A stretch of DNA of 64,000 bases, taken from NCBI GenBank assembly GCA_002189035.1, contig CM007990.1:2604001-2668000 (forward strand). The letters are read 5' to 3'. Within the stretch, counting starts at the first letter, position 1. The number at the start of each line of letters is the position of its first letter. Shown here piece after piece: positions 3,986 to 62,036 of the stretch. The DNA is from Utricularia gibba (Eukaryota; Plantae; Magnoliophyta). Position numbers and translations under genes: made by a program. Below the pieces are notes generated by a model, which did no database searches, was not told the DNA's origin, and saw nothing but the letters and a program-made list of their open reading frames with translations.

Positions 3986-6900
3986 GTGGGAAAAAGAGTT
4001 TTTGGAGAAAGAGTTTCTCCTCAAAGAAGCAAGTGGGAGTCGTTTTGAACTTGAGGAGATGTTTGAGAACGAGCCAGTGACACCTATAGAGATGCCAGTG
4101 GGTGACTCAAAAGGTAATCTAGGCTCACCATCTCGAAATTGTGTCCCAGAAGCTTGTAATGTACCAGTGAGCAATCAACCTGAGCAATCTGACTTGCCAA
4201 ATGTACCAAGCACGTTTTCTGCCAGAAGATCAGTCCGACAACGTAACCCTATTGTGAGATATGGTTTCATTGTTGATGCCGAAGGCATGGGAGACCTCAT
4301 ATTAGATGAGGAACCTTGGACTTATGACGAAGCAATCAATAGTGCTGAGTCAAGTAAATGACTTGTTGCCATGAGGGCAGAAATGGATTCCATGTATGAG
4401 AACAATGTTTGGACATTGGTCAATGCTCCAAAGGGAGTAAATCCTATTGGATGCAAATGGGTATTCAAAAGGAAAACTGACATGGATGGAAATATATCTA
4501 CCTATAAGGCACGACTTGTGGCAAAAAGATATCGTCATAAACAAAGTGTTGATTCTGATGTAACCTTGTTGCCTATGGCTAAGTCTATTCGATTTTGCTT
4601 GCCATTGCTGCTCATTTTGATTATGAGATGTGGCAGATGGATATGAGAGGAAGTGTACATGACACAACCTGAAGGTTTTACACAAGATCCTAGTAAAGTG
4701 TGTAAACTGAACAAATCCATCTATGGGCTTTAGCAAGCTTCAAGAAGTGGGAACATCAAATTTGATGAGACAATCAAAGAGTTTGGTTTCTCTCAAAATG
4801 AAGATAAACCTTGTGTATACAAGAAGGTAGATGGCTTGACAATCGTATTTCTCATACTATATGTGGATGACATATTAGTAATGGGAAATGATGTTGCAAC
4901 AATGCAATCAGTAAAAATTTGGTTATCCAAGAGCTTTCCAATGAAAGATCTTGGAGGTGTGGCTTATATATAGGGCATAAAGATCTATAGGGATAGATCA
5001 AAGAAACTTATTGGATTATCACAATCGACCTACATCGATAAAGTGTTAAAGAGGTTTAACATGGTTGATTCCAAAAGAGGTTTATTGCCCATGACACCCA
5101 AGGCACTTTCAAAAGTGATGTGCCCCAAAATAGAAGAAGATAGGGATTATATGGCTCGAATTCCACATGCTTCTCCTATTAGGTCAACAATGTATACCAC
5201 TATGTGTACTAGACTAGATGTGTCATATGCTTTAAGTGTTGCAAGCAGATATCAATCGAACTCTAGAATGGATCATTGGACTGCATTCAAGAGCATTCTT
5301 AAGTACTTAAGAAGGACTAAAGACATGTTCCTGATTTATGGTGGTCAAGATCTCGAAATGGGAGAATATGTTTCCAATCTCATTTGACTTGACGTCTCAA
5401 TCAATATACATATTCACCCTAAATGGAGGTGCAGTCACTTAGAAAAGTTCTAAGCAAGATTGCTCATTCACAATGGAACTAGAACGTCCATGGAGTACAT
5501 GGAGTCCATTGGTATGAGATACATCAATGATTGGCTCTAGTACAAGTGGGAGATTGTTAGTGCATGTGTTCTAGAGACAATCAACTCATTGGCAAATCTT
5601 ATCTTATGATATTTACTTTGAATTGTGATCAAATTTATATCATTGATAAAATCCTCTACTTGATCTATGTGCTATAGAAATTATGATGAGATCATAATGT
5701 GAGATTCTTCAAGCACTTATGATCAAGTTAAAAACTCCCTAGCTAGAGTATTTGTGAAATGAGGATATCACAAATACGGATAAGTTGGCACACATTGAGT
5801 TCCCTAAATTGTTTAGGCAATGGTTCTCACAATTGATGTAATCAGATTACTAGAACCTATGTGTGGGTGTCGATTAGAGAATCGATTCACTGGATGACTC
5901 ATCTTCGAGATGCTACTATGGGAAGCTAACCAAGTGTCAGTAGCAAGATCTCGAATATGACAGCCGTGCAAGTAAGCTTAGACTTGAGGTCAACAAAGTT
6001 ATCTTGATCTTAAGCTCACATTTTCGCTCATTACTAATGGGAGCCTAACCATGGCTTGCCTAGTATGGATGAGTAGGGATGTGACTCCTTAAGGTTGGAG
6101 ATAGTTGATTGATCAATAAAGGATTCATCACTCATGTTAGCGATGAGATCATATCTCAAGTAATTGCATCAAAATCTAACAGTAAGTCCTGGGTCCAGGG
6201 TAATGACACTCGAATTGTTTGAGTAGATCATTGAGTGTTAGTGCTTGAATGCAATTATAAGTTCGATACATCAGAAAGACACACACCCATGTTCTGGTAC
6301 CGAATGAGATATAAGTATGATGAAAGCTGTTCATTGCATGGTGGCTGGTCATGAAAAGGCTCAATCAGTTCACCTGATTATTCTTTAATCTTGGGGATCA
6401 TGATATGTTGCTAGATATCACTCATGATCGATAATGATGGATTTGATTAATTAAGAGTTAATTAATAAATCCATTATTACGGCCTTGATTGAGGAAGCCT
6501 ATAGGGTCATACACAATAGTGGAGTCACTCATCGATATAAAATAAAATGACACAATTACATGAGATGTAATTGGTAAAGTGGATAAATTAAATAGAGAAT
6601 TATTTTGAGATTAATATTGATTAAACTCAAAATAAAAGATCTCATATAGATATGATTTGATATGTCACAAAATATCTATAAAAAGATTTAGATCTTGAGA
6701 TCTGCTTCAAGGGTCTTCGTGCTCTCAGAGACTAATCCACATGGAGGCGTTTTTCTCTACTAGCACCTGAGGAATTCGACTAGCATTCAAGAGCCTTGAG
6801 AAGGTTATCGACGGAGTGCTCCACGTGTGGACACCATAGAGGCCATCTCCTATTGGCGGTTGGTGAACAACGGAGTCATCTGAAAGGTATTTCAGCATCC

Positions 6901-7004
6901 CTTAGTCTGATGTATACCGTATTCCAAGATCTGCGGTGGGGGTTTCTCAAAATTTTAAAATTCCGCTGCTTTTGAGACATACGATGTCTACGAGAAACCC
7001 AACA
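3986..7004 (+). mobile_element. 5'-truncated Ty1/copia element (Angela-like): integrase C-terminus, RT, partial RNase H, PPT, 3' LTR
   Basis: FLEKEFLLKEASGS, EMDSMYENNVWTLV..GCKWVFKRK..YKARLVAK, YVDDI, YLRRTKD; PPT CAAGTGGGAGAT (5543-5554) followed by LTR TGTTAGTGCATG...GAAACCCAACA (5555-7004). Confidence 0.88.
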
Positions 7005-7800
7005 GCATGAGACTTGCAAGAGACAAAATACCGACATTTTGTGGCTTGTACGTGACTTAGATCCATTGTGGGCAAAAGACTAACACTATTTAGAGGCCCA
7101 TGACCTACGACTTCTCAAAGTCTGCAATAATGATTGATCGTTTAATTGAACGAATAGGAAAGTTGGCTGCATACAAAAGACAAAAAAAAAAAATATGAAA
7201 AGAAAATTTGAGACACTTGGAATCGAACTTTTTGACTCACTTTTTGCACTATCAATTTTGTTCTTCCTCTTTACTATAGGGAGGAACAAGATATTTAGCT
7301 TTCTGTTTTCATTTTCTATTTTTATGGCTATTCATGGATAGACTTTGTTAGTTTCTAAGAATTGATGAAGTTTACTTCAATATCTTGAGCAACAATCTTG
7401 ATTTTTTTCTGAATTTTTTCTGGATTTCACATATTTCCACGTGTCATGTTGCAATTTTTTCATAACGTTTCCTCGCAGATTTTGATGAAGAGTAAGGTGA
7501 AGAGCACCATCTTTGACTGTATTGGTTTGAGTAAGATAACGAATTGTTTGTAATTGGGAGACTTCAATGATGGATGGATAGTGACTTCGTACTCGTCATT
7601 AGTCATTGGCAACAACTAGACACATACACAAAATTTGATTTTGAGGGCAATCGACGACAATCATATTATCCTCTCAATTGTTCAAGAGAGAATCATATGA
7701 AATTATTCCCACGCCTCTTTGTAAAAGAGTGTAAGGGAGATTACACTATTACTTGCTCTTATAAGAACATCTTTAGTGGTTTCCATAAATGCTTATGTGG
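7005..7800 (+). mobile_element. LTR fragment, diverged paralog of 8310-9120
   Basis: Collinear similarity by eye (e.g. GAAGAGCACCA, GAGTGTAAG, ATGAAGTTTACTTC) to the LTR at 8055-9320 and to 28540-28700. Confidence 0.6.
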
Positions 7801-7964
7801 CTTTCTTTTATTGAGTTTCCTTTATGAAGTTTCTTAATTTACTTTTTTAATTTTCAGAAAGATTCTTTATTATTTAAAACATAAATTTCGTAATATTAAA
7901 ACATTTTGAACACAAAACATAATGCAAAATTAGTTGAATAACTACTAATCATAGAATACATCAA

Positions 7965-10500
7965 TTGAAATTTGTCCAAATATACTCGATCAAATCTGTT
8001 TTCAGGTGACGATGGATACTACTATCACGAAAATGCTCCACTCATCCTAGATAATGTTGCATATTCATTCCAACATCTTTGCAACTTTCTGGGGTGTGAA
8101 GTATCATTTTCTAGTTTATTATGAGGTATTATTATGTGTTAATCTAATGTTAAATCGTCTAATTAGGAATTATATTGACAAGTAATTGATTTTCCTAGAA
8201 AAATCCTATTTTACTATTTTGTATATACTTTCTTTATTTTTTTCATGCATTTTGACCAAGATATGTCAGGAGGTAGTCGTGGAGTATTGTAGGAGTATTG
8301 CAAGAGGTCAGACTTTGACTTTTCGAGTCTTGCACGCGACTTGGAAGTATTGAAGGCAAAAAATTGACGTTGGTCAAAGCTCTTGACTTATGGCATGTCA
8401 GAGTCTGCAGCAATGATTGGGCGCTAACTTGCACGCAAAGGAAAACTGGTGGTGCACACAAGACAAAAGGAATGATGGGAAGAGGACCAAAGTAGTTAAG
8501 GTACGTGAGGAGTGAGATAAAAACCAACTTGGAACACTTGTTTGAGAACTTTTTGACTTCCTTTTCACACTTATTTTTGTACTTAGAACTTTTGGGTTCT
8601 TCCTCCCCTCCAAGGAGGAAAAATACTTAGCTTCCATTTTTCGTTTCTGTTTTCATGGTCCTTTGTGACTAAAAACCCTTTAGTTTCTGGGAGTACATGA
8701 AGTTTACTTCCAAGCCCTGAGCAATACACTCGATTCTTTATTGAATTCATTTCGGATTTCGCAAACTTCCACGTATCTTGTTGCAGTCTCTCTATAACGA
8801 CTCCTAGTCAAGGTCCATGAGTAGCAGGCCACTCCTCGCGGATTTTGGTGAAGATCAAGGGGAAGAGCACCAACTCCAACCCTACCGATTCGTGGAAAGT
8901 AGCGGATTGTTTGTAGCCGAGGTACCGTGATAGTGGACAGGTAGTGACCTCGTGCCTGCCACTGGCCATGGGCAACAGTTGGGCACATGCACGCAATTCG
9001 GTTTTGAAGGCAATCCTCTTGTCTCCTCAATTGTCCAAGGAGGAACCACATGAGACTATTCCCGAACCTTCTTGTCAATTAGAGTGTAAGAGAGAGTAGG
9101 CTATTCCTGGCTCCTATAACCAGTTATTCAGAAGGAATTAGTGAAGACCAAGGTGAGGATAGACAAAGGAAGGAGACGGAATCTCATTCCTAGGAACTGC
9201 GTCTCGTAGTCAAGGCCAATCACTTAGGTTGTAACTTTTATTTCTGCATTTGAAAACCCTCTTTTGCAAAACCGTGACATTTTGTAAAAGTTTTCTATAA
9301 AACACTTTTCACGAAAAACAATTATCTGAGATCGATACTCGTACTATGCTCTTTTGTGTTTTATGTTTTATATATTTAAAATTTGTTGAGGAAAGGACAC
9401 ACAACAATGAGGGTTGGACTATCATAGATCGATCATACTCTTCTACAACAGTATCTTTAGGAATAGAATGTCCTTCACTTTCAACAATCATATTATGCAG
9501 TTTAATACCTACATACATGATATCCCATAAAGTTTTTCGATCTCAAGTTCTTGCTGGAGATGTTAGTGCCCCGAATTGACTTTGCAATATTCCAAAAGTA
9601 TGCTCTATGTCTTTTCTAGCACTCTTCTAGAATTGAGCAAAAAAACGTGCTTTTTGCCCTTGTGGAAGTATTATAATAGATTTTACGAACACAGCCCAAA
9701 CAAGATAAATGACATCAGTCAAATAATATCCCATATCATAAGTAGAACCATTTATAGTGAATTGCACTTGAGGGGCAACACCGTTACGTAACGCATTTAG
9801 TAATGAAGAATATTATAAAACATTGAGATCATTATTTGCACTTGACATTCCAAAAAAAGCCAAATGCATATATATGTAGAGGTTATTGCTTCTAACATAA
9901 GTGATGGTTTGCCTGGGAAGCCTCGAGATTCCTCTCAAGCAAGCAAACGTTCCAAATTTTCAATTGTGGGAGCTCTCAAATATTGTTCTGAAAAGCAAAT
10001 ATGAGTAGCGACAACAAAATGCTGAATACATTATATCAGTGTTGCCTCTTCAATTCGAATATATTCATCTACACTATTAGCACAAAAACCATAAGCTAAA
10101 ATATGTATAGAAACCGTGTACTTTTGCTAAAGCCTCAGCCCCACACGGCCCATGCAATCTATTTTTTCTTGAGAAAACAAATCTTGACTATGGATAATGT
10201 CAACTATTTTTTCAAATAAAGATCTTTTCATTTAAAATCTCCTGTGGAATTTTTCATTGGTGTAAATTGCATCATTGTAAAAATAATCAATCATGAACCT
10301 TTTATGTCCTAGTTCACGGTTACGCTCCATAGATTGGCATGGTTGTTGATGCCTTGAGGTTTTTTGTTGCTCCAGATATGTTTCATTGAGGATGAAATCA
10401 AATCCCTGTTGAATGACTACAATATAATCAACAACATCTTCTACAAAAAACTTCACTGTATGGCTCCCAAAGGGTTAATCCATGATTTGAATGGAATTCA
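7965..10500 (-). pseudogene. Pong-like PIF/Harbinger DDE transposase remnant
   Basis: ERNRELGHKRFMIDYF..DAIYTNEKFHRRF (10232-10330); ESRGFPG; PSLMLEAIT..IW.FFGMSSANNDLNVL (about 9820-9900); IKLHNMIVESE (about 9500); C-terminus FRDSSIHRHLKTDLIEYIWTNFN* (7965-8035). Internal deletion and stops. Confidence 0.85.
8055..9320 (+). mobile_element. Gypsy-type LTR inserted in the Pong transposase 3' end
   Basis: TGTTGCAT...GAAAAACA; transposase sequence is present on both sides; no clean TSD, boundaries approximate. Confidence 0.6.
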
Positions 10501-57226: not shown

Positions 57227-58935
57227 ATGGAGGCTGCCACTTCCTCTGCTTTCCTGTTGTATCCCAACTCTAAGAAGACCCGCTTCTGTTCCCTTTCCAA
57301 TTCTTCTTCCTCCAGGGCCGTAGGCTGTGTTTCCCTTGGCGCTAAATGTCCTCGCCTGGCTGCGTCTCTAGCAACCGTTGACACCTCCATTAACAGCGAT
57401 TCTAAGGATTTGATTCCCAGAGTGGATAAAACTGGCAAGTTCTTCAGGCCCAGAGCTGCTCGGGAGCTTGCACTGTACGCGCTTTCCCGTCTGTTTTACA
57501 ACGACAATGGCGAGGATTAGATTTTTTTTTCCGTTTTTCCTGTCCTCTGAGCTCAAGCGGCCGATAATTGTTTCAGGGTTATTCTGTATGCCGCGTGTTT
57601 AGATGGGTCAGACCCTGTCCGTCTCTTTGAGAAAAGGCTGAATGATACAAGAGGTGATGTTATGCATTCTGCTCGTCTTGTTCTTCTCTCCTCTCATGTA
57701 TGAGAGCCCTTTCAGTTTTAGCTCTGTTGCGATGCTTTGCCTGTCTTCAATTATCTCTTTCAGATGAACAAGGAAAATGCCATTCTTCTCATTTTCTGTT
57801 TCTCCAGAGTCGGAGTATGAATTGGATAAAGCATCTATGATGTCATATGATTACATGAGCTTTGGAGGCCCCCTGTAACTTTAACATCCTCTGCTGAAGC
57901 TGATGAAATTTTCCAAAATGATCGAAGGGAGTCTGAAATTGGTAACTTCTTTCATTTTTCATAGTGTATGATAGACGTGCTGGTGAATTATTACTGGTAG
58001 ACAACTCCATAGTATCTTTGTTGCAGAAGCAGAAATTCTTTCAGCTCCTCCAAAGTTGGTGTACAGCAAGATGGTTTTGCGGTAAGGGCTTGTGATGGAG
58101 CCATGTATATGTGTTTGGTAATGCATTATATTTATTCGATCTCTCCCACGGTTGAAATCTCTTCATATTTCAATCATCCTCTGTTGCAGGTTTACGCGTA
58201 AGCTTTTGGTCGCAGTTTCTGAGAACTGGAATAATAATGTGCAAGCCCTCGAAAAAGTTGTACCTCCTAATTGGATGGTTAGTTTCCATTTCAAATTCTC
58301 ATTACTAATGATCTGATTATTTGCTCAGTGTAGATGAATGCGTTAATCAATCTGTGTTTGAGGTTCCCATCTTTGTAATATAATGTGTTATTAACCATCC
58401 CTAACTTACAAAATTCTGAAAGGGGAATACATGGTGCTGGTGCACTGAGCTCGACATATGTATGTTGTAGTAGGTGCAGTTTTCAAACACATGAGGGAGA
58501 TGTGGTCATGTTAGTTGGAGTGAAAACCTAGTGATGGAACTAATTGTACAGGGATCTTGAAGTTGTTTTAGATTGGATTTTGGGTAATGCGAGACAGGGT
58601 TGTTGTATGATCATTTTAGTTGATGTGGAGTGTTTAAATAATAATGCAGAAGGAACCAGGTGGTAGAATCCTTGAGTTTTCGGTTCTTCATCTGGCAATG
58701 TCAGAGATAACCGTCCTGGGGACAAGGCAACAAATAGTTATCAACGAGGTTGGTGAAGTTCCAGTTTGCATCATTATGTAGATCCGTTCAATGATTTGAA
58801 ACCGTGAACATGCTGCACCTCACCATGCAGGCCGTGGACCTTGCAAAGCGCTTTTGCGATGGGGCAGCACCTCGCATAGTAAATGGCTGCCTGAGAAATT
58901 TTGTCTTACAACTCAACAACCAAAAAGATGAGTGA
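57227..58935 (+). CDS. Plastid NusB-domain (antitermination-like) protein, 7 exons, with a 1-bp frameshift in exon 3
   Basis: Exons 57227-57474, 57577-57653, 57808-57941, 58027-58081, 58190-58277, 58650-58748, 58831-58935. Motifs PRAARELAL, DPVRLFEKR, APPKLVYSK, AVDLAKRFCDGAAPRIVNGCLR. Sum is 806 nt, one short of a multiple of 3. Confidence 0.85.
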
Positions 58936-59102
58936 AGCAACAGTTGGTTCTTGGCTTGCATGATTTGTGTACCCTTCCCTTGCTTTAAAACTGTCATGAT
59001 TTATTCATTTTGGATCATGCTTCATCTTATGTGACTTGAAAGCACCACTGTTCCACAAAAATATGTATGGATCGCAGGTGTTTCTCAATACGGGAATGAG
59101 AT

Positions 59103-61276
59103 TCATAGATTCCACATATTGTTGAAACCCTCAGGGAAAGCATGATCATAGTCATGGTAATGGAAAGTTCGGTAGATGAAGTTGGAGAGCCATTTGGAGG
59201 CTGTGAAACACAGCAAAGCCGCACCGATGATGCCATACCGAACACCAGCAGACATGACTCCAGCACCACTCTGTTTTGCAGCTGCAACAATTCCAACCAA
59301 ACCAAGGGATGCTATCTGCAACAAGATTTTTGCTGCTTGCAGCACCTTGTACGCAGTGCTGCAGCTGCTACAGCTCACCGTGTGTGACCGATACCTGAAT
59401 CACATTAACATACTCAGTCAATTCATATTGTTGCTCACTCAGCAAACAATTCGAACACATGCAATCCCTGCACAATGTTTTCAGTTGTTTTACCTATCGA
59501 AGAGCTGCTCCCGGGGAGGAATAGGAGCTTGTGGTGAGAGTTGAGTGAACTTGGTTCTCCAGTCAACTTGAGTGCCACCGTACTTGTTTAGCCATCTCCG
59601 GAAACCTACAACCAGTGCATCTGCCTTTGTGGGAACATAGCAAGACTTGTGCCAATTCAAAGCACCAACTTCGATCAACTTTTTCTCCTGTGGCATTGTG
59701 AGGAAGAGCGGTTGATTGAATGCCAAAGTGCAGAGAGCAAATAGGTACGAAACTGTTCAGCTACCTCCACATGAAGAAGATAGAGATCTGAGTCCAAAAT
59801 TAGGTTCTGTCCGATATGAAATATCCAACGTGGGAAAATTCGATCTATCCAGACAGCAAAATTTCTTGGAGATGCAAATATCAATCTGCTATTTCCAGGA
59901 CTGACTGGAACACAGTAGAAGATAAGAAGTGCCTTTTTATTGGGAGGAAAAGGAAGGGTTGCTGATTCCTGCATCAGTAGCATAATTTAAATCACGTGAA
60001 ATTGCTGTGAGCACAAACATGGAATAGAATATGTAACCTCCTTAGATTTAGCGTTCGTTTGAGTGCTCCCGGGACTAAAATAGCCATAGTAAAGACACGG
60101 TGGAACGAAGAAGTTTTCCCCAAACACTTGTTTTGCAGTGAAACCATTTATACTCAGTTGCTGCACATTGATTTCCAGAGGTCTCCCTCCTTCCCTGTCG
60201 GCTTTCACAGTGCAGAACAATTACCATCCGTCAGCCATTACAGAGTGATACTGAGATTGGATCCTAAACAGGAGGAGTTGGAGGGATACTTATCTTTCTG
60301 GAGTTTTTGCCATCCTCATTATTCCATAATGAGCATATGGTACATGGGCAGGGTCCATTAGATTTTCGATCAGAACTTCGTAGCTGAAAAGGTGAGTTTT
60401 CTCATTGAACACAGAACTACACAAGTGCCTTTTTCTGCAAGAATTCAGGGAAACTTGGCAACTCGCAATATCTGCCTACCCGTAAGGTATGTCTCTGCAG
60501 ATCATCTGATTTGTAAATGACGGATCATCAAGTTCTGGAATATAATGAGGCTTCTGTTCTGAATAAATGTCCTTGTAAACAGGATCAGAGTTCGGCCAGA
60601 ACCAAAGAATGCCATTTTGGACGCAACTGGGATATACAGCGACACACGCTCTCTTGGAAGTATGGATCTGCAGAATGAAACGAAATTTTCTATGAAGAGA
60701 GTGTTTGGTTGATTCCAGTCAAACATCACGTGAGTGAGTGAAATGTATTGTATGTACGGGAGGGCCGTCTCTTGGAGCTTGAGGAATGAATTTGCAGTCA
60801 CCGGCGGCGCCGAAGCACCACCCATGATAGACACATTGGAGCCTCCCCCACTTATCAATCCTCCCTTCTGATAAGGGGGCCAGTCTGTGGGGACAAGCAT
60901 CATCAAACACCTTCCAGGAATTCTCATTCCTATCCCACCAAATCACGATGTCGATCCCCATCACCTTCCTGCCATGCGGCCTTCTTTTGTCGAGATCGCA
61001 AACTGGAAGAACAGGATACCAATGGGCATACCAGTCAAACAGATGGGACCCTTCCTCTCCAGTTTCTGATGATTCGAGGGGTGGGATCGGAGAAACTGCG
61101 GTGAAGACTGATTTGTTGGCCCTAGCCAGTGGGATATGTGTCTGTGTTACTGGATGAATCGGGGAACCCTCCTTGAGCTTCCGGAATATGGTGAGGGTGT
61201 TGGGGTACTTCCTGTTCGAGATGGGGGGGCGGTGAATAGAAGGAAAGGCTGAAGCTTTCAGCCGCAGAGGCTCCAT
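59103..61276 (-). CDS. PTC52: Protochlorophyllide-dependent translocon component 52 (Rieske/PaO-family oxygenase), about 552 aa, 7 exons
   Basis: Exons 60758-61276, 60480-60667, 60294-60383, 60038-60209, 59765-59968, 59494-59687, 59103-59394 (1659 nt, assuming an AT-AC intron 3). Rieske [11 protein letters not shown]...CVYHGWCF; iron motif [13 protein letters not shown]; CSSC; HYHDYDHAF. Confidence 0.88.
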
Positions 61277-62036
61277 GCGATATGATTCGCTTTGACAGAA
61301 GGGAATGGAGAAAATTCCCTCCTGCTTTGCTTCCCAGAGGAGGGAGTGGATAAGGTTAGTTGGTTGGGTTGGTATATATCATATCATCATCTATGTATTT
61401 GTACGGTACCGATCGCATGCCAATTGCCATGGAGTCGGAGGAGCGTTTCAGAGTTCATCCTGGCAAGCAGACTTTTTGCAGCAGTGTATGGACCAGGCCG
61501 GGCCTGCGGACCGAGTTTGGGCTTTTCCAACGCACAAAGTCGACATATGAGGTGAAGGAGGATCAACTAAAGTACAAGATTTAGGTCAATGATAACTGGG
61601 AAATTTTAGAGTTTAGAAAAATAATGAAAAAAAGTGTTATTGGTCAAACAAGGACTCGTCTATAAGACATATATGACTTGACTGAGGGAGCATGTAAACA
61701 CTGAAGCAGCGGAACAACTAGAGCTTCTTTTGTTACTAGGATTTGGATAAGGGTTTCTTTGCATGATAAATGATTTATAAATATTTTTTTAAGGCTTGAT
61801 CTGTGGTGCCAAAAATGTTTGAGTCAATTAAAAATGCACAATTAGACGTTTGACAGTAGACAAAAAATACAATTAAAATGCCATATTTCCCAATTTCTTC
61901 CATTAACCACCCACGACAAGCCGACAATGCAGCGGAGCAGCCACACTCATTTCATTTTCCAACAATGGATCGAATAGCCTCTCCTCATGTTTTAGTATTA
62001 TTTAGAATTCGAGTGTGATGAAAGAGAATGCTGCAT

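Follow-up and report, generated by a model that had tools for sequence, protein, structure and literature searches.

A natural AT-AC intron, probably of the U2 type, in a PTC52-like gene of Utricularia gibba and other flowering plants

We analysed a window of 64,000 nucleotides (nt) of the Utricularia gibba genome (assembly GCA_002189035.1, contig CM007990.1, positions 2,604,001 to 2,668,000); coordinates of the window count from its first letter. On its minus strand lies a gene for a PTC52-like chloroplast oxygenase, of the PTC52/ACD1-like family, and the third intron of this gene (60293 to 60210) starts with AT and ends with AC. Both dinucleotides are genomic, and the mRNA junction lies exactly there. 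Judged by its splice signals, intron 3 is probably a natural U2-type (class II) AT-AC intron. By comparison with orthologues, it probably predates the split between monocots and eudicots.

Exon 3 (60383-60294) is followed by ATAAGTATCC from 60293 downward, and the 84-nt interval closes with TTGTTCTGCAC at 60210. Without splicing, the end of exon 3 reads AGA TAA, an arginine and then a stop, with the TAA at 60290..60292 on the minus strand. Joining 60294 to 60209 keeps the reading frame. An earlier, sequence-only reading of the window had described the exon end, the TAA, the 84 nt, the AT..AC ends and the in-frame joining, and all of these were confirmed. Its remark that nearby GT donors either cut the iron-binding motif or follow the stop also agreed with the sequence, in which these GT dinucleotides fall within AHVPYAH or behind the TAA.

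One search gave 19 public runs containing the stretch. Four of them were compared with the window over 58900-61450: X4, X9 and X13, labelled as RNA and belonging to three studies, and X3, a DNA run from a fourth study. All four were served as contigs, and the RNA label of X4, X9 and X13 was the tool's guess, backed by the removal of all six introns of the gene. In the contigs of X4, X9 and X13, the joint 60209/60294 skipped 84 nt, its ends reading GT..AT on the plus strand and hence AT..AC in the direction of the gene. The two sides of the joint have no base in common ('both' = 0), which leaves no room to shift the cut to a different dinucleotide. The other five introns were removed in the same contigs at CT..AC (GT-AG on the gene's strand), showing that these contigs are spliced transcripts. 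The X3 DNA contig (record 8) covers 59466-61450 and was identical to the window across 60210-60293, with no joint; elsewhere in the gene it had nine single-base differences and one 10-nt insertion. Therefore, the AT and AC ends belong to the genome and were not produced by misassembly, and X3 has no DNA copy of the spliced form.

The junction from 60294 to 60209, which the sequence-only reading had predicted, was thus recovered without ambiguity from three studies, and the bases 60293 and 60210 were reproduced by an independent DNA run. The contigs contained none of the outcomes it had named as contradicting it, that is, GT/AG ends hidden by an assembly error, another junction, or unspliced transcripts only. 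A form retaining intron 3 was found in none of the RNA contigs of X4, X9 and X13, although contigs drop rare forms.

Two other donors were considered and rejected. A GC donor at ATG/GCAAAA, paired by hand with the downstream AG acceptors, gave no combination that keeps the frame, and no such joint was present in the contigs. A U12-like GT at AGATAA/GTATCC is located downstream of the in-frame TAA, is unused in the contigs and is not conserved in orthologues.

The 5' splice site AAAG/ATAAGTAT (60286..60297, minus strand) matches the U1-complementary CAG/GTAAGTAT at 9/10 positions other than +1. It has the two features by which U2-type donors of this kind were defined, a consensus match except at +1 and a G at +5 (PMC1557818), here judged by counting matched positions. 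In its U1 match, it beats all five of the gene's GT donors (GTACAT, GTAGGC, GTTACA, GTAGCT and GTAAAA). The plant U2 branch consensus is CTRAY, and a candidate U2-type branch site recognized by its motif, CTGAC, was found at 60230..60234 (minus strand), with its A at 60231 and 21 nt between this A and the 3' splice site. The 3' splice site itself, TTCTGCAC/ (60210..60217, minus strand), shares the ending YCAC/ with the orthologues.

Signals of the minor spliceosome were searched for in the window intron and in the orthologues presented below. The U12 donor /ATATCCTT was absent, the orthologous donors reading ATGAGT, ATTAGT, ATAAGT and ATATGT. The U12 donor core ATCCTT (+3 to +8) was matched at 2/6 positions in the window donor, and at 0-2/6 across the window and the orthologues. 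In the last 40 nt of the window intron, the best branch site resembling TCCTTAAC was TCTGTAAT, with 5/8 matches, 28 nt from the 3' end. The best matches to TCCTTAAC across the window and the orthologues reached 4-6/8 at wrong distances, as in GT-AG control introns, and none was found 10-15 nt from the 3' end in any orthologue. The U1-like donor and the missing U12 donor and branch motifs bear out the view of the sequence-only reading that the intron is U2-like and not U12-like.

As a U2-type intron, it would be recognized at the donor AG/ATAAGTAT by U1 and later by U6, through a near-perfect match to the GT-AG consensus everywhere but at +1. U2 would pair with the CTGAC branch site, 21 nt separating its A from the 3' end. 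For the second step, A at +1 and C as the final intron base would form the non-Watson-Crick contact that two Gs form in ordinary introns. In U2-type introns of yeast and human, a change of G1 to A is rescued by a change of the last base from G to C.

A search with exon 1 retrieved many annotated plant proteins of ~260-285 residues. Among these, 20 of the 23 reaching exon 3 ended with '...R' exactly at the donor position, the ending that read-through of AG/ATAA or AG/ATGA would give. These models came, for example, from Salvia, Olea, Lonicera, Helianthus, Cucumis, Citrullus, Coffea, Pistacia, Thalictrum, Kingdonia, Smallanthus, Mikania, Lithospermum and Ambrosia; Amaranthus was added separately. 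The DNA of four orthologues was read directly: (i) Olea europaea (L001, 5001-9754), with AGAG/ATGAGT...CTGCAC/T, annotated as a Rieske-only model and then a PaO-only model; (ii) Thalictrum thalictroides (L002), with three tandem copies carrying CAAG/ATAAGT or ATTAGT...CAC/, and the gene split in the annotation (4136-9289); (iii) Cucumis melo (L005, 4001-9015), with ACAG/ATGAGT...TTTCAC/A, also split; and (iv) Musa balbisiana (L057), with GCAG/ATATGT...CTTTCAC/A and a truncated model. In every case with DNA read, the intron was in phase 2 after AG and ended in YCAC. The bases A-2, G-1, G+5 and T+6 were present in 6/6 distinct AT-AC donors, whereas G+5 together with T+6 occurred in 2/17 GT or GC orthologues (Fisher p about 3e-4, uncorrected for relatedness). 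This pattern is the compensation described for GC-AG donors (PMC1557818). Splicing as in the window (...S/VKADREGG or ...S/LKVDREGG) was found in models from Genlisea, Anisodus and Coffea arabica, and in the metatranscriptome contig L006.

The three PTC52-like copies of Thalictrum are located within 7 kb (63-7300 of L002). Two of them are nearly identical, with a run of N between them, and may have arisen by a recent tandem duplication or by assembly duplication. Two further models run across the junction. The one from Oryza glumipatula (P0218) reads ...DPGR-YNIHLLSTV-EFDQERGG, and the one from Cucumis sativus (P0069) reads ...NR-YLCQFYLLNSCI, followed by a stop. Both look like read-through into an intron whose first bases are ATA. 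For cucumber, the string would suit a donor more similar to ATATC (ATAT or ATAC, then a Leu codon), which hints at a form possibly closer to U12.

Further plant versions were found by scanning metagenome contigs with the exon 3 peptide. Some contigs were Fabaceae-like, with an exon 4 80-92% identical to that of Cicer or Gastrolobium. Others, from the same samples, were labelled Populus-like, being linked to a cluster containing a Populus protein. Both groups carried CCAAAAG/GT...AG/TGAAAGC, a GT-AG intron in phase 1, giving an mRNA one codon shorter. Compared with the AT-AC version, the acceptor is shifted downstream by 2 nt and the frame of exon 3 is off by 1 nt, and thus the rosid GT-AG versions are no simple reversals. 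A GC-AG intron, AAAAG/GCAAAT...TTGCAG/, was found in Microthlaspi (L003, with a 535-residue model) and in an Arabidopsis-like contig (L022). As Brassicaceae have GC-AG at this site, surveys based on Arabidopsis could not see the AT-AC intron. The 69-nt GC-AG intron of the Arabidopsis-like contig (about 1585-1653 of L022) is in frame if retained, and would add GKYIICISNSCFNPFTNLQILLA. Presumably, one deposited Arabidopsis PTC52 isoform carries such a 69-nt insert.

A FastTree phylogeny of 94 full-length relatives, reached via a conifer transcript contig with a single open reading frame (L029) and rooted on gymnosperms, roughly tracked plant phylogeny. The form 'PK-[E/V]-KADREGG' occurred only in rosid groups. 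In monocots, magnoliids, Ranunculales, Proteales, Caryophyllales, asterids, Cucurbitales and Fagales, the junction codon was S or R. Such a codon before VKADREGG marks a phase-2 intron after AG, irrespective of its termini, and the labels were noisy, so it was used as a hint only. The junction residues were missing or altered in the models from Macleaya, Escallonia, Aquilegia, Spirodela, Nepenthes and Liquidambar, which we took as forced canonical splicing.

The tips verified by DNA were Musa, Thalictrum, Olea, the window and Cucumis for AT-AC, and the legume-like, poplar-like and Brassicaceae sequences for GT-AG or GC-AG. With these tips on the accepted species tree, parsimony indicates that AT-AC is most likely the older state for monocots and eudicots, and that GT-AG is derived within rosids. 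The AT-AC intron 3 would then probably have been in place before the monocot/eudicot split. This split occurred well over 100 million years ago. In some rosid lineages, a GT-AG intron with an mRNA one codon shorter most likely replaced the AT-AC intron, and in Brassicaceae a GC-AG intron did so. These results give no support to the compensated double change from GT-AG that the sequence-only reading had proposed for this lineage. The AT-AC ends are common to Olea, Thalictrum, Cucumis and Musa, and are thus old, and the GT-AG and GC-AG versions, confined to rosids and one codon apart (phase 1 versus phase 2), look derived. The comparison of orthologues, suggested by the same reading for dating the change, did reveal AT-AC introns from Musa to Olea, but no recent change.

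The AT-AC intron may first have arisen either from a GT-AG or from a U12-type AT-AC intron. For the AT-AC II introns of animals, an origin from U12-type AT-AC introns has been proposed, by a C-to-G change at +5 and subsequent 'trapping' (PMC2831892). A step from the Musa donor ATATGT to the eudicot donors ATAAGT and ATGAGT would fit a series of U12 origin, as a pattern only. Were gymnosperms or ferns to carry a U12-type form here (ATATCC... with TCCTTAAC), the family would document the rare conversion of AT-AC introns from U12 to U2 stepwise, from ATATCC to ATATGT to ATAAGT. It is quite possible, although we stop short of calling it probable, that the PTC52 intron is the plant equivalent of the AT-AC II introns in sodium-channel genes of animals: U2-type, in place before the monocot/eudicot split and kept for well over 100 million years, and with rosid lineages that escaped from the 'trap', by a GT-AG intron displaced by one codon and then the GC-AG intron of Brassicaceae.

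Three rival explanations were weighed against this evidence. A non-canonical junction seen in one data set is often an artefact, and the junction could come from misassembled intron ends, a template switch of the reverse transcriptase or an unspliced pseudogene. Here, however, independent DNA agreed at every intron base, and three RNA studies gave the same joint with no shared base, and hence without microhomology for template switching. The seven exons stayed in frame across 552 codons, and AT..AC ends were also present in four other genomes. An artefact is already refuted as far as contigs allow, and has next to no probability left. A U12-type intron, removed by the minor spliceosome and with degenerate signals, is unlikely as well. 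The window donor departs from ATATCCTT at +4 to +7, and all six orthologous donors carry G+5 and T+6 where C+5 and C+6 would be expected of a U12 donor, even though about a quarter of the U12-type introns in plants typically have AT-AC termini (PMC7367187, Table 2). There is a GTATCC 4 nt inside the window intron, but it is not the cleavage site and it is unconserved (GTATAT in Olea, GTATTT in C. melo, GTCATA in Thalictrum). In Musa, TCACTAAC lies 18 nt before the 3' end and matches TCCTTAAC at 6/8 positions. Against this, the branch motif was missing at 10-15 nt from all orthologues, and the CTAAC of Musa and Olea is just as well a plant U2 branch consensus. The U2-type reading and its proposed age have weak points of their own. 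The polypyrimidine tract is weak (9/20 pyrimidines), though this is common in plant introns, and the assignment to the U2 type comes from sequence. Runs served as contigs cannot show splicing efficiency, rare retention or minor alternative junctions. The deep conservation relies on the DNA of five named species plus truncated models ending with R, and this ending alone is no proof, since read-through of a canonical AG/GTAAGT also gives R and a stop. In C. melo, an N inside the intron makes its length unreliable.

The third explanation concerns why the intron persisted, and may hold alongside the U2-type reading. It says that the AT-AC intron was kept since inefficient splicing or retention tunes PTC52 expression. 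Long conservation of a suboptimal site invites such a functional view, AT-AC sites are less fully used than GT-AG or GC-AG sites in plant RNA sequencing data (PMC6310983), and a U2-type AT-AC intron in an Arabidopsis transgene responds to splicing-factor mutations (PMC5473141). We nevertheless consider tuning improbable. Retention of intron 3 as a regulatory switch, as put forward by the sequence-only reading, found no backing in the three RNA runs, within the limit given above for rare forms. The stop is forced by AG/ATAAGT or AG/ATGAGT in phase 2, and the in-frame TAA is a by-product of the donor sequence in that phase. With the Musa donor ATATGT there is no immediate stop and the read-through goes on for 12 codons, and the Arabidopsis-like GC-AG version has no stop at all, its 69-nt intron staying in frame. 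Persistence without function is accounted for by the 'trapped' model (PMC2831892), and several rosid lineages swapped to GT-AG without obvious consequence.

Read exon by exon on the minus strand, the seven exons of the host gene make up 552 codons, starting with the ATG at 61276 and closing with the TGA at 59105-59103. The Pfam and relative searches were run on the exons one by one. The coding part of exon 1 (60758..61276) has 173 codons without a stop, and encodes a transit-peptide-like N-terminus and a Rieske [2Fe-2S] domain (PF00355, E = 1.3e-24). Transcript contigs reached up to 61359, beyond the ATG, and the joint 60667/60758 was present in X4 and X9. Intron 1 (60668..60757, 90 nt) is a GT-AG intron in phase 0, seen as CT..AC on the plus strand. 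Exon 2 (60480..60667), delimited by contig joints and reading frame, is followed by intron 2 (60384..60479, GT-AG, 96 nt). Exon 3 (60294..60383, 90 nt), delimited in the same way, ends with ...CCA GAA AG, the last two bases being the first two of a Ser codon. It carries the region of the mononuclear-iron motif, at the start of the catalytic domain (VanA_C, PF19112, E = 5.3e-5). After intron 3 (60210..60293, phase 2), exon 4 (60038..60209, 57 codons, set by contig joints) starts with T GTG AAA GCC GAC AGG. Next are intron 4 (59969..60037, GT-AG, 69 nt), exon 5 (59765..59968) with the PaO domain (PF08417, E = 9.1e-23), intron 5 (59688..59764, GT-AG, 77 nt), exon 6 (59494..59687, from contig joints and frame) and intron 6 (59395..59493, GT-AG, 99 nt). 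The limits of introns 1, 2, 4, 5 and 6 are those of contig joints. The coding part of exon 7 (59103..59394) has C-terminal hydrophobic stretches typical of PTC52/PAO proteins, and ends with the stop codon.

PF00355, PF19112 and PF08417 each lie on their own exon, and all three domain features of PTC52/ACD1-like proteins were recognized, the iron motif also by direct reading of exon 3. The window exons were 76% identical to PTC52 proteins of Paulownia and Sesamum and 74% to that of Erythranthe, as named by NCBI, these names being annotations without a functional test. Identity with Genlisea was 81%, over a partial model. By these exon identities, the window gene groups with Lamiales. Lamiaceae flavonoid 8-hydroxylases, identified by name, fell in the same clade as the window protein. 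The domains identify the host gene as a PTC52/ACD1-like Rieske non-haem oxygenase, and its family was never in doubt.

A few other differences between the runs and the window were found in this gene. In exon 7, one extra C follows position 59134 in X9 and X13 (RNA) and in X3 (DNA), and is missing from the window and X4. With the extra C, the protein has an end typical of PTC52 (compare L006, ...HDYNHAHR); the window, without it, ends differently. This is either a real polymorphism between accessions or a frameshift of the reference lineage, placed 11 codons (10 residues) ahead of the normal stop. In intron 4, the 10-nt insertion of X3 relative to the window is CCACATATGA, at 59988, an ordinary intron indel between accessions. 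Alternative splicing of intron 6 (59395-59497) was considered and rejected. The X13 joint, 59397/59497 versus 59391/59491, is an aligner shift, caused by a single A/G difference at 59496 beside the junction.

Few intron classes are as rare as the U2-type AT-AC introns. The PTC52 example is native, verified in RNA and conserved across angiosperm lineages, and it sits in a well-known chloroplast gene family. With AT-AC, GT-AG and GC-AG at one site in related lineages, it offers a comparative series for how the major spliceosome tolerates A..C ends, and for how such introns persist and are replaced. It also matters for annotation, as gene predictors limited to GT/GC-AG truncate or split PTC52-like genes at intron 3, and these models are correctable. 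Direct comparison with the DNA revealed the split in Olea, Thalictrum and Cucumis melo, and the truncation in Musa. Similar damage is inferred in Salvia, Coffea, Helianthus, Lonicera, Pistacia, Amaranthus and other genera. Some 20 more truncated models, outside Olea, Thalictrum and C. melo, stop with '...R' at the same point as the splits in these three. Some database models splice the intron correctly (e.g., a C. sativus RefSeq isoform), so that it is implicit in databases. Our literature search found no paper tying PTC52 or ACD1-like genes to AT-AC or non-canonical splicing.

The class itself is already known. A cross-species survey from 2006 counted 24 AT-AC II introns, 15 in human, six in mouse, three in fly, and none in worm and Arabidopsis (PMC1557818). 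In plants, about 0.01-0.05% of the U2-type introns were classed as AT-AC, without being named (PMC7367187, Table 2), and AT-AC introns of all kinds make up about 0.06% of plant introns (PMC6310983). U12-type AT-AC introns have the same terminal dinucleotides, but the ATATCCTT donor and a TCCTTAAC at 10-15 nt are theirs only. GC-AG introns with compensated donors are alike in that a deviation of the donor dinucleotide is offset by a stronger U1 match (PMC1557818); they need no change at the 3' end, whereas AT-AC needs a C as the last base. A splicing reporter based on GFP shows that Arabidopsis machinery also removes a U2-type AT-AC intron (PMC5473141). That intron is fortuitous, located in a transgene and in competition with a nested GT-AG intron, while the PTC52 intron is native, constitutive and conserved. 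The U2-type AT-AC class II introns of SCN4A and SCN5A, and the TAF2 intron of human and fly, resemble it in their termini, a donor that otherwise fits the GT-AG consensus and has G+5, the lack of U12 motifs and their conservation over large distances (PMC1557818). Unlike SCN4A and SCN5A, the host here is a plant gene, and the spliceosome dependence, experimental there, is inferred here from sequence. Next to these systems, the PTC52 intron is a well-supported addition to the class, with an unusual depth of conservation.

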